NCBI RefSeq assembly: GCF_009834535.1
Contig: NC_045713.1
Location: forward strand, 6,634,001-6,698,000
Length of the DNA: 64,000 nt
Direction of reading: 5' to 3'
DNA from: Camelus ferus
Taxonomy: Eukaryota
In this document: positions 1-13,100 of the stretch, piece by piece
How positions within the stretch are numbered: the stretch's first letter is position 1
How the letters are laid out: the number at the start of each line of letters is the position of its first letter
The notes under the pieces: model-generated
Databases searched by the model: none
The model's input: only the letters and a program-made list of their open reading frames with translations
Told to the model about the DNA's origin: nothing
Program-made: the position numbers and the translations under genes

Positions 1-2513
<2,513 letters not shown>

Positions 2514-2713: not shown

Positions 2714-2719
2714 AATAAA
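2714..2719 (+). terminator. ACHE proximal poly(A) signal
   Basis: AATAAA about 200 nt after the T-exon stop. Confidence 0.85.
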
Positions 2720-2799: not shown

Positions 2800-3320
2800 G
2801 AGGGGTAGGTGCTAGAGCCGGCGGGAGGCACGGACCTCCGAACTAGGGTGCTGAGAGTTGGATCGCCTCAGTCGCGGCGGCGAGGACGGCCCGCCCTGCG
2901 AGGTGGAGTTCACGCCTGCGCAGTGAGGCCAGCGGCGCGAGCGCGGCGGTGCATTGTGGGAGCCCCGCGAATGTGTGTGATCTTTTCGGCCGCTGGGTGC
3001 TACTTTGCTACCTGGGGCCCGGCGGGAGCGACCCCAGAGTCCTCGCGCCGGTTCTGCCCGAAGCTAGCCCAAGACCCGGGCTGGGAGGAAGCGCTGGAGC
3101 CTGGAGTCTCCCTGGAGTTCGTTCCGCGCCGCCTGGAGAACGTATCTGCCCGGCTCGGCGACCGCCGCTCCCGCCCATCACCCTGGAGCCGCTGAAGGAC
3201 GTCCACCTGGGCCTGGCTCCGCCCGGCCGCGGCCCGGCTCGCCTTGCCCTCCTCTCCGGCCACTACCTCTACTACCACTACGGCTGCGACGGCCTGGATG
3301 ACCGGGGCTGGGGCTGCGGC
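2800..3320 (+). promoter_or_regulatory. UFSP1 CpG-rich promoter with ZNF143/SBS-like and NRF1-like motifs
   Basis: High CpG density. GCGGTGCATTGTGGGAG at 2946-2962 (reverse CTCCCACAATGCACCGC, SBS consensus); CACGCCTGCGCA at 2911-2922. Confidence 0.6.
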
Positions 3321-3839
3321 TATCGCACTCTGCAGACACTGTGCTCGTGGCCAGAGGGCCGGCCTGCGGGAGTGCCTGGGCTGGCTGCCGTGCAGGCGGC
3401 TCTGGAGGACATGGGCGACAAGCCCCCTGGGTTCCAGGGCTCGCGGAGCTGGATCGGCTGCGTAGAAGCCAGCCTCTGCCTTGACTATTTCGGGGGGCCC
3501 CAAGGGCGCCTATGTCATGTGCCCCGTGGAGCCGGGCTTCATCGGGAACTGGAGAGGCTTTACTCCCACTTCGCAGGGGGTGGGGGGCCTGTAATGGTTG
3601 GAGGGGATGCGGATGCCCAGTCCAAGGCCTTGCTGGGAGTGTGCCTAGGGCCAGGCACGGAAGCCTATGTCCTGGTATTGGACCCTCACTGCTGGGGTGC
3701 TCTAAACAACCCCAGTGAACTACAGGCTGCTGGGTGGGTGGGCTGGCGAGAAGCAAGCATGGCCTTTGACCCCAACTCCTTCTACAACCTGTGCTTGACC
3801 ACTTGTAACTCGGAAAAGCAGCAGCACGCCCTGGACTGA
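3183..3839 (+). CDS. UFSP1: UFM1-specific peptidase 1, intronless, predicted CUG start, 218 aa
   Basis: Peptidase C78 motifs GWGCGYR (catalytic Cys codon 3315-3317) and DPH (3681-3689). No in-frame ATG lies upstream of the Cys; ACC-CTG-G at 3180-3186 has a strong Kozak context. The first in-frame ATG (3411) gives a 142-aa product lacking the Cys. Confidence 0.93.
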
Positions 3840-3949: not shown

Positions 3950-3955
3950 AATAAA
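3950..3955 (+). terminator. UFSP1 poly(A) signal
   Basis: AATAAA 110 nt after the stop. Confidence 0.85.
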
Positions 3956-7100: not shown

Positions 7101-10100
7101 TTTACAGAGCTGGAAAAAGAAAAACAGAAACCCCACTAAGTGACTCAAGGGTTCACTTCTTCCTCCAATCCCCATGTCCTCAGAACCCTAGAGAACTGCC
7201 TTTTAATCTTTCCTTGGAATAAGAAAAAATAAAGGGCTTAAGAATAATAGCACTTGAAAGCTAACAGTGCAGTCAGGGCCAGCCCTCGAAGGGCATGAGC
7301 CCATGGGAAGGGGGCCGCCCTATTAGAGAAATAAGGATGTATATAAAAGCAGTGCCAGATTATCTTCTCCCTGCCACCCCACTCAAAGGAATGGAGCATA
7401 GGTGTCTTCCCCGCCTCCGACACCATTTTCCCCACTCACAGAAATTATCTCAGCCCGGGAGATGTTGGGTGCGATGTTGCGCATGAAGAGAGAGCAAGTC
7501 TTATGCAGAGGTCGGGGTTTACATTCCAGCCCAGGAGTGTCCTTAGGCTTCTCCCTTTCTTCTTCCTTAGGCTTCTCCTTTTCCTTGAGTGCTTCTTCTA
7601 TGCAGGAAGTGGTAGGAATTAGTGAAAACTGATTGTTAATTGATGAGAGGAGGATAGAGAAGCTGTCAGACCTACCCCCCACCAGTCTCTCCCAAAAGCC
7701 CCCCTCCCATCAATTTCACCAGCCTCTCACCTGTCCCACCCTTGTTCAGTAGGAAGAGACCAGACTACAAGCAGAGAAAATAAAACCTACCAGCCTCTTC
7801 CTTCTCCTCCTCGGCCTGGCCGCTCTCGGATTCCGACTCCGACTCGGACACACTGCCTTCGTCAAAGCTGTCGTCACCACTGTGCTTCCTATTCCGCTTC
7901 TTGCTGCTCTGTGAGAGCCACGGCAAGAGAAGGGGAGTTAGGTACCAGGAACTAACACTGATGCTGACCCTGTGCAAGGGGAGACCCTACCTTTTTGGCA
8001 TCTTTCTCAGAGTCTTCTTTTTTCTCTTCCTTGTCCCCGTCACCCTCGGATTTCTTAGTTTTGTCATCACTGGAGCTGTCATTTTCAACCTACAGGTAAA
8101 GACAAATCACCAGGGATGTCAGTCTCCCCTTCAGCCTTTACCAGAGGGCCCTGCCCACCCTCCACAGCTGAGCCCACCAGTTCCTCTCCCCTACTCAATA
8201 CTCAACCCTCTAGAGTTCCAGCTCATTTGGACCCACCACTAAAGCAGCTCCACCCTCCTCCCCAGGCCTCACAGGCAGCACCCAGAGGCCCCAGCACTCA
8301 GACCTGTTTGCCGTCTTCTTTCTTGTCATCCTTATCATTGGCCTTGCGCTCTCCATCCCCCAGGGCTGGTCCAGCCCGACCTTCCTCTTTCTTGCTGGGC
8401 TCCCCAGGCTTTCCTGCCTGTTCCTCCTCCTCCTCCTGCTCCAGGATACGTAGATCATTCTCTGTACCTCCTTCCATCTTAATCACAGCTACCAACAAAG
8501 GGAGCAGAGGCTGTCAGTCTACTTCCATTTCCAACCAAGACCTTGGTCACAAGACGGCCCCACCCCTCCCAACCCATATACCTGCATCCAGCATCTTGAC
8601 AATGGCATCAGCTTTGTCTATGTCCAGCAGAAGATTATCAAACCAGCCACTCTCCATGAGGGACAAGAATACTCTTAGTCGGTTTTGCAGGGCCCCCCGG
8701 GCCTCCTGCCGTCGCTTCCCCACCTCATCTGGGTGGTACTTAGACCGAAACCTTGGAAGGAAGGGAGGAGGGAAGAGACCAAACAGTCACTGGAGGCCAG
8801 GGCCAGGACATGGGGAGGGGGCCCAGGAAAGTTAGGGCATAGCCCCCATCCTCTCACACCCACAAAAGATCATAAAAGCAGAGATTAGGGAAAGAGGGGT
8901 ACACTAGAACCACCCAATCCCCCCCCCAAGAGAACCAGAAGTTATGCTCTGAGAAGATCTGGGGGGGAACCAGGAACTAAGAGCTCTGGATTTGGGAAGA
9001 GCATGACTACAGGGGGAGCCAGAGGTAGAGAGGCAAACTGATTGCCCTAAGTGCCTGGGAAACACAAATTTTAAAAAGCATAGTTTCCCAAAGCTTCCGA
9101 GAGGAATGCTAAGGAAATAGTAAGCCCCAAAGAACCCCCCTCTCCTTACCAACCCCAAACTAGTCATTAAAAAGATTGCTCCCACCAGCTCCCTCCACCC
9201 CTAGGTGGAAGACAAGGGAAACCTGAAATCACCAGAAAGGAAAAACCAAAAAAAGGCAGAATACCTTTCTCCCCCCTTGGGAAGATAAGCAGATGGTGAA
9301 GGGACAGGGAAAGACCAAAGGGAGAAACTGAAGTGCCCTTATAACTCAGTTACTGCCCACAGGGATGGAAAGAGGACAGGGGTGGAGAATTATGGGTAGA
9401 GCATGAAAAAGAAAACACTTAAGGTGTGGGGGAAGAAGAAATTAGGATATGGGAAAAAGGGGGAAAGTGTGAGAAAGTCCCAGAAATCAAAAACAAATGG
9501 GGAAAACTAAAGACCAAATGGAAACTGGAGGGGGGGAAAAAAGCAGCAAAAAGTGTTAGGCAGGAGCAAGAACAGGTACATAGAAAGAATGAAAGGTATA
9601 TGAGGGGGTGAGACAAGACACAGAGAAGAGGGGACAATGACAGAACAGAACCANNNNNNNNNNNNNNNNNNNNNNNNNNNNNNNNNNNNNNNNNNNNNNN
9701 NNNNNNNNNNNNNNNNNNNNNNNNNNNNNNNNNNNNNNNNNNNNNNNNNNNNNNNNNNNNNNNNNNNNNNNNNNNNNNNNNNNNNNNNNNNNNNNNNNNN
9801 NNNNNNNNNCCCGGATGCCCCACCCCCGCGGGACTCCGCGGTGGGGGCCCTGACTGACTAACTGCCTAAGCAATCACATTCAGCTAAACCGCTGCATTGT
9901 GCACAGCAGTGCCCTGCCTGTCTGCCTGGCCGGGCAGCGCNNNNNNNNNNNNNNNNNNNNNNNNNNNNNNNNNNNNNNNNNNNNNNNNNNNNNNNNNNNN
10001 NNNNNNNNNNNNNNNNNNNNNNNNNNNNNNNNNNNNNNNNNNNNNNNNNNNNNNNNNNNNNNNNNNNNNNNNNNNNNNNNNNNNNNNNNNNNNNNNNNNN

Positions 10101-13100
10101 NNNNNNNNNNNNNNNNNNNNNNNNNNNNNNNNNNNNNNNNNNNNNNNNNNNNNNNNNNNNNNNNNNNNNNNNNNNNNNNNNNNNNNNNNNNNNNNNNNNN
10201 NNNNNNNNNNNNNNNNAGGATGCCACAGCCACACAGGGTCCCGGCGATCAGGGATGACAATGACCCAATACCAGCAAGTGGGAAGCAGTCTGTCTGCTGC
10301 CCCAAGGGAACAGGTGGCTCTGGCCAACTGCCTGGAGGTGTCTCACTCACTGAGGACAGTGGGGAAGGGAGACGGGGTGGGGGCCGTGGCGGACATGGAA
10401 GTGAGGAGGAGAACCCATCAGCCAGTGCTATTGTACTTCCCTCCCCCACCCCCAGGAAGTTCTGGATTGGGGAAAATGGGAAGAGGACAGGGCTGCAGGC
10501 TCCACTGGCGGGGCCAGGGGAAACATGCCAGGGAAAAGACAGCAGGAGAGTAAGGGGCACTCACCACTCCTCATCTTTATGAGCCAGGAAGAAATCCTGC
10601 ATCTGCTGCCTTCGAAAATCCAGCTTATAGTCGTTATAGCGCTTAACTGCCTCTGTCTCATCCACAGAGTCATCCAATGACAGGAGAAACTCCTTGAAGG
10701 TCTTCATCACGGGTGGTGGCACACCCAAGTCAATCTCTGCGATGCTGCCCAGCCTGGGGGGGGCCCGGTCAGGAAGTCTTGGTTGTGGGGGAAGAGGGTG
10801 GGGGGATGGGGGGCCAAGGTAGCCAGCTGCCCCCTTCCTTTGCCCACCAGACACCACCCCAGACACTGACTGCTACCACCCCCACAAGCACTCCTCTGAG
10901 TGCCTAAGCCACTTCCTGGCTCTAGCCATGGTCTTCAGCAACCCCAATCCATCCCCCGAGCCTACTGACTCCCTTCTCCCGAGAACCCCAGGTCTTTACC
11001 TGGCCTGGATAGGCAGAACATGATGCTGCATGATGTGGACGTCTGGGTGGCCCCAGGGCTGAGGGGGGCCATAAGTTGGGCCCCCACCCCCCCCAGCATA
11101 GGGCATCTCATAGCCACTGTGGTATGGGTCAGAGCTGTGCTCATCCCTGAGGGTGGGGGACACAAAAGTCAGACAGAGAAGGGAATCACCTCTCCAGAGC
11201 ACAAAGGAGGATGGAACAGAAGGAGGGGCACAGATGGAGTATGGTCTCTCACCAAGGATTTAAAGGGATTAAATAAGGGTGGGTTTATGGGAAGTTTGAG
11301 AAAAGGAAATGACAAAGACAGTTCTCAGCAGAAGTAAGGGTAGATAGCTGAGGCCCAGGTAGGACAGAGGCTAAGGAGAGAAGACAGAGCAACTGTTGCC
11401 GTCTCACCAGTCTCGCCTCATGCGCTTCTGCGGGGGGCTGAGCTCGTGGCGGGGAGGAGAGAAGCGCTCTCGCCGATTCCTATCGTAATCACGATATTCG
11501 CCCCGGCTGCGACGCTCCCGGCCGCGGTCCCACTCTCTGGAGATCAAAACAAGTAACGGTAAATAAGACATGGTTGGTTATCCCACGGTCACACTCCTGG
11601 ATAGGCCCTTCCCAACCTATCTCTAAGAAACCAGACTAAAAGCCTGAAATTATACAACTAGCCTCTAAACAGAAAAAGGCTCTCATCTCCTTCCATAACT
11701 TTAGGCATTACCCACAAACTGATGGCTCACAATTCTTCTTCCAGCCTGGCCTTTTTCCTGAGTTCCAGACCAACATTACCAGTCCCCTCCTAAACAGCCA
11801 TTTTCACCTCAAATTCAACATGTCAGAACTGCACCTGTTAATTATATCACGTGGGCCCAAATTTGCTTCCCAGTCCTGTTTCCCACTCTCAGCTGCATCA
11901 ACACATTACCAGGTATCTAGTTATCAAGTATCACACTCACCATTATTTGTAACTGACTTGTTAATCCTCTGCCTCAAGGCCTATCAAAGCTGTCCTTCTC
12001 AGGGGGAGGTGTAGCTCAGTGGTAGAGCACGTGCTTAGCATGCAGGAGGTCCTGGGTTCAATCCCCGGTACCTCCATTTAAAGAAAAGAAGAAAAAAAAG
12101 CTGTCCTTTTCTTTGCCATCCCCACAAACTCTGCCCTGGTCCATGTGCCCTGGTCCTGGACATTTTGCCTTTAAGTGAAGTCTTGGTCTGGTTTCCCTGC
12201 CTCTGGTCTCTCTAAGGTCAAAGTGATCCTTCTCAAATACAAATCCAATCACACCATGCCCCTGCTTAAATGCCAGTCCATAGCACTGTTCAAAACCTTG
12301 GTTCCAGGCTCATTCCAGGCTCTCTACCAATCACCAGCTGACCCATCCCCATCTTAACAAAATAAAAAAGAAAATCCTCTGTTGTCACCTGGTGGTTTTA
12401 AAAAGTTTTAAAAACTTTTGAAGATTAACAAGCTTTTGCTTATGTAGGTTGTATCTATTCACTCAACTATTCAAAAATTGAACCAAAAATACCAAATAAC
12501 ATTGAAGTTACACAGTAACACAAATTATATACTTTTATTTAAAAATGGCTATTTTCCAAAAAAAAATTTTAGTGAGAAAAGTTACACGGTTTTTCATTTA
12601 CAAATCTTTTCAAAGCTGGCTTAATAGAAACAGCTGGATTCTCATAGTATTTGCTTCTCTATTCAGCCTGTTACGAGTTGTTTAGTTGAAAAATATGCAG
12701 AAAAGCTGGCCTCACACTGATGTGCAGTTGGAAAACAGGAAGATTTTAATAGCTTTTTCAGATAACTGGGGATATTCTTTATTACCCAAAATTTAGCAAG
12801 AGATAGTTTCTTAAAGGCTAGTTGCAATGTTGAATCTAAAAACTAAATTAATGAACATTTCGTACTCTGCTACATTAAAATTCATTGTTCTACCTGGCTC
12901 TTTCAGTGGATCTTGACACATCTCATTACACAGTATCAAAGTGTCATCATCATGAGTATCACTGCCCATCTCACCAGAAAGTCTTTAATGGGAAGCTGTC
13001 AAACTAACACTGGCAGACACAAGTTTTCAAAATTTTAGTTTTCACTGGCAAGTTCCACTTCCTCACCTGCAACAAAACTGACAACGTTCTTCGAAGTAGT

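Follow-up and report, generated by a model that had tools for sequence, protein, structure and literature searches.

At this locus the central question is where translation of UFSP1 begins. In the window, meaning the whole 64,000-nucleotide stretch of DNA analysed here, the codon for the catalytic cysteine precedes the first in-frame ATG, and a protein begun at that ATG is 142 amino acids (aa) long; the first-pass annotation had pointed this out, and direct reading together with a script confirmed its coordinates. It had further placed the start of an active, 218-aa protein at an ACC-CTG-G in a frame that is open upstream, where every coordinate also holds, and had concluded that active UFSP1 needs a CUG start. 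That conclusion is supported by the conservation of the CTG and by a spacing of 228 nt to the first in-frame ATG, which is the same as in human UFSP1. The features on which the argument rests are collected in Table 1.

Table 1. Features of the UFSP1 locus, in window coordinates.
Feature	Position	Strand	Remarks
ACHE C-terminal tail, stop TGA	2511-2513		Read directly
AATAAA poly(A) signal of the upstream gene ACHE	2714-2719	+	
Probable core promoter	2914-2962	.	GCCTGCGCA at 2914-2922 and GTGCATTGTGGGAG at 2949-2962
Out-of-frame ATG and 74-codon uORF, ending 10 nt past the CTG	2971-3195	+	Weak context: C at -3, T at +4
Conserved leader block TCTGCCCGAAGCTAGCCCAAGACC	3052-3075	+	DNA alignment columns ~224-252
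ACC-CTG-G, proposed CUG initiation codon (CTG 3183-3185)	3180-3186	+	CTG in 11/11 placentals and in echidna
Full UFSP1 CDS (predicted), single exon, 218 codons and stop	3183-3839	+	Pfam C78 and structure 2z84 match
Tyr equivalent to mouse Tyr41 (Y33 of the 218-aa form)	3279-3281	+	
Catalytic Cys, TGC in GWGCGYR, equivalent to mouse Cys53 (C45 of the 218-aa form)	3315-3317	+	
First in-frame ATG, counterpart of mouse Met85; the annotated 142-aa 'inactive' form begins here	3411-3413	+	
Asp-Pro-His box, equivalent to mouse Asp175 and His177 (D167 and H169 of the 218-aa form)	3681-3689	+	
AATAAA, likely UFSP1 poly(A) signal	3950-3955	+	Read directly

Judged from its sequence, the open reading frame from the CTG is a single-exon UFSP1 gene, encoding a UFM1-specific cysteine protease of family C78. 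The 218-aa form matches the Pfam Peptidase_C78 profile over residues 22-204 (148.3 bits, where the Pfam gathering cut-off is 29.1; E 2.8e-43; profile positions 4-200 of 200), and the 142-aa form therefore lacks the first third of the domain, the cysteine included. The best match in the PDB is mouse UfSP1, 2z84 (381 bits, E 2.3e-113, query residues 1-210), and it starts at query residue 1, the residue encoded by the CTG itself; the match to UfSP2, 3oqc, is weaker at 135 bits. The short single-domain form and the ACHE/SRRT synteny mark the gene as UFSP1, apart from UFSP2. The order ACHE > UFSP1 < SRRT is kept in all 11 related loci fetched (10 placentals and echidna), with the 3′ end of SRRT lying beyond the UFSP1 poly(A) signal on the minus strand here, and with SRRT likewise on that strand in each of the related loci. 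The gene thus characterized is an ordinary mammalian UFSP1 protease gene, for which cleavage of pro-UFM1 and of UFM1 conjugates is predicted.

In a FastTree phylogeny of ~2.7 kb of locus DNA, the window and the whale Kogia form a group (support 0.999) within Laurasiatheria, which indicates that the window probably derives from a cetartiodactyl-like placental mammal. The window contains two runs of N, at 9654-9809 (156 bases) and 9941-10216 (276 bases).

In a cross-species alignment of UFSP1 proteins, the columns of the catalytic Cys and Tyr and of the Asp, Pro and His are invariant. The study of mouse UfSP1 by Ha and colleagues in 2008 reportedly assigned Tyr41 to the oxyanion hole. The cysteine corresponds to the Cys53 named by Ivanov et al. 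(2011, PMC3105428). Both protein and DNA alignments show that cross-species protein conservation begins at LEPLKDVH, the point at which the first-pass annotation had placed the start of the protein.

The frame is open upstream of this point as far as 2847, that is, for 112 codons of 70% GC, and ends at TGA 3837-3839. Such openness is unremarkable, with an estimated chance of roughly 0.15. According to a script-based analysis of the frame, the first ATG in it after the upstream in-frame stop, TAG 2844, is the one at 3411. In the context of the CTG, atcaccCTGg, positions -4, -2 and -1 are C, while -3 is A and +4 is G; the Kozak context, which the first-pass annotation had called ideal, is a strong one.

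One alternative, which is the reading of public annotation, is that translation starts only at AUG 3411, giving a 142-aa protein without protease activity. This codon is the first in-frame AUG and stands in a good context (G at -3, G at +4), and databases use the AUG for this genome and for dozens of other mammals. Such exclusive use is nonetheless highly improbable, given the way in which the 76 codons before 3411 evolve. Over the stretch from CTG to ATG, the first, second and third codon positions have 27/77, 15/76 and 59/76 variable sites, and the only indel is one of 6 nt that keeps the frame. This is the pattern of a coding sequence, and these codons carry the invariant catalytic Cys and Tyr. 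In human cells, moreover, the form begun at the AUG is virtually undetectable (Liang et al. 2022, PMC9168615). Upstream of the CTG there is no codon periodicity, indels measure 1, 2, 5, 7, 19, 20 and 43 nt, and the sequence is strongly diverged, with 36-86% identity to the window. The protein-coding signature starts at CTG 3183, not upstream of it.

The first-pass annotation had named an alignment of the start codon across mammals as a check, and this alignment places a CTG at the same codon in 12/12 species. The loci compared with the window are those of elephant, anteater, flying fox, pygmy sperm whale (Kogia), zebra, galago, naked mole-rat, pika, Mus pahari, arctic fox and echidna. The placental set (n = 11, the window and 10 others) covers Afrotheria, Xenarthra, Laurasiatheria and Euarchontoglires; no marsupial UFSP1 appears among the 120 matches listed. 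Counted over kindred species, and hence not over independent events, all 11 placentals carry the equivalent of CTG 3183 together with a purine at -3, and 10 of the 11 have G at +4; with echidna added, the figures become 12/12, 12/12 and 11/12. The echidna start reads gcgCTGg, with G at both -3 and +4. The distance from the CTG to the first in-frame ATG downstream is 228 nt in 10 placentals and 234 nt in Kogia, where the longer spacing is due to one 6-nt in-frame insertion. An in-frame ATG before the Cys is absent in 8 of the 11 placentals.

Elephant has an in-frame stop that precedes the CTG by 24 nt, and anteater one that precedes it by 33 nt, which confines the start to within a few codons of the CTG in these two species. 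These stops bear on the possibility that another near-cognate codon, CTG 3081, 3192, 3207 or 3213, is used instead of or besides 3183, yielding slightly longer or shorter active proteoforms. The alternative CTGs are in frame; 3081 is flanked by G at both -3 and +4, and 3207 is conserved in 10 of 11 species. Yet CTG 3081 and its surroundings are not conserved, and the elephant and anteater stops lie downstream of its equivalent. Both 3192 and 3207 have C at -3, while 3213 varies synonymously (CTG, TTG, CTT or CTA), as does CTG 3294. In human UFSP1, mutation of 226CUG and 247CUG, the equivalents of 3192 and 3213, had no effect, whereas mutation of 217CUG abolished expression (Liang et al. 2022). 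Use of one of these other codons is accordingly an unlikely account, although it is the least implausible of the alternatives to CUG 3183. A minor longer proteoform may exist in this species, as the frame is open to 2847 and CTG 3081 has G at both -3 and +4.

A longer protein from GTG 2949 was also considered and rejected. The open reading frame list shows an 'M' at this position, which the first-pass annotation had correctly recognized as a GTG. The codon lies within a conserved promoter-like motif, being part of GTGCATTGTGGGAG, and the region upstream of the CTG lacks a coding signature; a Pfam search of the 112 codons upstream of the CTG (2847-3182) gave no match.

An active enzyme could also arise without a CUG start if an upstream exon were spliced in and supplied an in-frame AUG, as in some NCBI models of echidna and several mammals. 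The NCBI model of echidna, which extends over 7.2 kb, has such an exon, and the window frame is open for 112 codons upstream of the CTG. Several observations make this arrangement very doubtful. Mammalian UFSP1 consists of a single exon (Ivanov et al. 2011), and so does the mouse gene. The ACHE poly(A) signal stands just 464 nt upstream of the CTG, with conserved promoter-like motifs between, and its position leaves less than 470 nt for the UFSP1 promoter and leader together. The 23 nt that precede the CTG contain no AG dinucleotide. The long database models (250-374 aa) have mutually conflicting N-termini and read through the non-conserved leader: the ATG at which the 326-aa horse model starts is replaced by a stop in Equus quagga, and the bobcat model begins in another frame. 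In the echidna model, the acceptor of the upstream exon sits inside a repeated SINE-containing unit.

The echidna repeat is a feature in its own right. At positions 7575-8060 of the echidna locus (L011), a unit of ~200 bp, made up of a SINE-like sequence and the first ~20 UFSP1 codons with the CTG, is present three times in tandem, and only the third copy runs on into the full open reading frame.

The region between ACHE and the CTG has the layout of a compact promoter and leader. Two blocks, GCCTGCGCA and GTGCATTGTGGGAG, are conserved across placentals (DNA alignment columns ~80-130) just 3′ of the ACHE poly(A) signal and probably form the core promoter. The first is presumably an NRF1-like palindrome; the reverse complement of the second resembles a ZNF143 SBS site. 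Farther downstream, TCTGCCCGAAGCTAGCCCAAGACC, 131 to 108 nt upstream of the CTG, is kept in most placentals and overlaps the -126..-97 element of human UFSP1 (Liang et al. 2022).

The leader is poor in ATGs. Across the 200-nt leaders of the 11 placentals, 1 out-of-frame ATG is observed against ~10.7 expected from composition, and the window has no ATG in the 200 nt before its CTG. The leader ATGs that have been gained are all in frame, at -24 in Mus, -60 in Heterocephalus and -72 in Vulpes. With few upstream AUGs, the leader would let scanning ribosomes reach the CTG; one caveat is the ATG at -212 (2971), close to the probable transcript start. Among the species compared, ATG 2971 occurs only in that of the window. 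By comparison with the human leader of 216 nt, its place would be at the cap or upstream of it. The uORF that it opens would be relevant only if the transcript starts upstream of 2971, in which case it would compete with the CUG and lower its use. A hairpin 14-20 nt downstream sometimes aids non-AUG starts, and such a structure was considered here as an aid to the CUG and rejected: the fold of 3183-3262 gives no signal of a stabilizing hairpin downstream of the CUG (-33.8 kcal/mol, where shuffled sequences average -33.9; z = 0.02).

Taken together, these data make it very probable that active enzyme can be made only by ribosomes that scan through the leader and initiate at CUG 3183, reading it as Met. 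Ribosomes would scan the GC-rich, AUG-poor leader of ~200 nt and initiate at CUG 3183 with Met-tRNAi, where most of them would be captured by the strong context, with A at -3 and G at +4. Ribosomes that leak past would next encounter the weak AUG at 3298, which is out of frame, and after it AUG 3411, from which the catalytically dead 142-aa form would be made. The use of CUG 3183 in this species, its reading as Met and a role for eIF2A are expected by homology to human UFSP1.

The age of the CUG can be judged from outside the placentals. In the protein alignment, Met1 of the UFSP1 of gecko, lizard, monitor, alligator, caecilian, newt and limpet aligns exactly to the Leu encoded by the CTG, with M-x-L-L-x-x-V-H in the non-mammals, compared at the protein level only, and L-E-P-L-K-D-V-H in the window. 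Given this alignment and the CTG of echidna, the simplest history is that an ancestral ATG changed to CTG in stem mammals, and this is probably what occurred. It is likely, in fact, that the CUG start is pan-mammalian: the ATG-to-CTG change would precede the monotreme split, the AUG-free leader would have been kept for more than 150 million years, and in-frame AUGs would have been regained several times independently, in murids, the naked mole-rat, canids and possibly, at the very same codon, the jerboa. The first-pass annotation had called the CUG probably ancient because it took the window to come from a distant lineage. The great age is supported by the CTG in 11 placentals and echidna; the distance is not, the lineage being just another placental that groups with Kogia.

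As for the jerboa, a Jaculus jaculus protein reads AAMELLKDVH, with Met exactly at the position of the mammalian CTG, at the protein level only. This Met may represent a natural reversion of CTG to ATG.

The exact 142-aa product of 3411-3836 is present in NCBI and UniRef. Its 90% cluster and the neighbouring clusters list dozens of proteins of 142 aa under the name 'inactive Ufm1-specific protease 1', which span carnivores, bats, pigs, whales, elephants, horses and others, and the long models described above belong to the same clusters. The short form on record among 'inactive' cluster mates indicates that automated annotation takes the ATG, and the expectation of the first-pass annotation that the start would be mis-called proved correct. 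UFSP1 of this species and of dozens of other mammals is thus listed either as a 142-aa 'inactive' protein or with an invented N-terminus, which is a problem of annotation. One consequence is that comparative or knockout work in livestock and wildlife could wrongly take UFSP2 as the sole UFM1 protease.

Some cetacean records show a different kind of irregularity. The UFSP1 models of Phocoena sinus, Monodon monoceros and Sagmatias obliquidens look damaged, with internal deletions; in the vaquita model His replaces the catalytic Asp, and these models carry 'LOW QUALITY' or '-like' names, while Kogia is intact. The damaged models of dolphin, porpoise and narwhal type could reflect either decay of the gene in Delphinoidea or merely poor gene models.

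The CUG start itself is already known, having been predicted in 2011 for most mammals and proven in 2022 in human cells. Ivanov et al. (2011) described UFSP1 as a single-exon gene in which 16/20 mammals have no in-frame AUG before Cys53 and the first AUG corresponds to mouse Met85, and noted that a functional enzyme would result from a CUG that lies near mouse Met1 in a good Kozak context. As the first-pass annotation had noted, human UFSP1 was later shown to start at an upstream CUG (Liang et al. 2022; Millrine et al. 2022, PMC9638016). Liang et al. (2022) proved the 217CUG start by mutagenesis, endogenous tagging and mass spectrometry (MS), found Met at position 1 of the protein, and showed that translation depends on eIF2A and that efficient translation needs a leader element 97-126 nt upstream. 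Millrine et al. (2022) provided Ribo-seq, MS and activity data for human UFSP1 and cite Ivanov et al. (2011).

Liang et al. (2022) state that the CUG mechanism is restricted to primates. The statement is contradicted by the CTG in 11 placentals and echidna, and by Ivanov et al. (2011); it probably stems from reliance on annotated protein starts. With the mechanism established, the value added by the comparative data lies in correcting this statement and the annotation, and the locus offers what would be a clean, long-lived case of a main open reading frame wholly dependent on CUG initiation.

Compared with the coordinates and motifs printed in these papers, the window shares with human UFSP1 the ACHE-UFSP1-SRRT neighbourhood, a CUG upstream of the Cys and 228 nt before the first in-frame AUG (217CUG and 445AUG in human; Liang et al. 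2022), the purine at -3 and G at +4, and a conserved leader block at the human -126..-97 element. The two differ in the hexamer before the CUG (ATCACC in the window, ACCGCC in human) and in the equivalent of human 190CUG, which is CGG in the window; the out-of-frame ATG at -212 likewise sets the window apart from human UFSP1. Relative to the set of Ivanov et al. (2011), the window supports the same claim, with a single exon, no AUG before Cys53, a first AUG at Met85 and a CUG near Met1. The present comparison goes beyond that set by adding Xenarthra, Afrotheria and a monotreme, by matching the CUG to the exact codon of the non-mammalian Met1, and by counting the depletion of AUGs in the leader. 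Mouse UfSP1 (2z84) represents the other outcome: it is AUG-initiated and 217 aa long, and the equivalents of its Cys53, Asp175, His177 and Tyr41 are all conserved in the window. Mus pahari keeps the CTG codon as Leu9, and murids, having gained an in-frame AUG 24 nt upstream of it, do not depend on the CUG.
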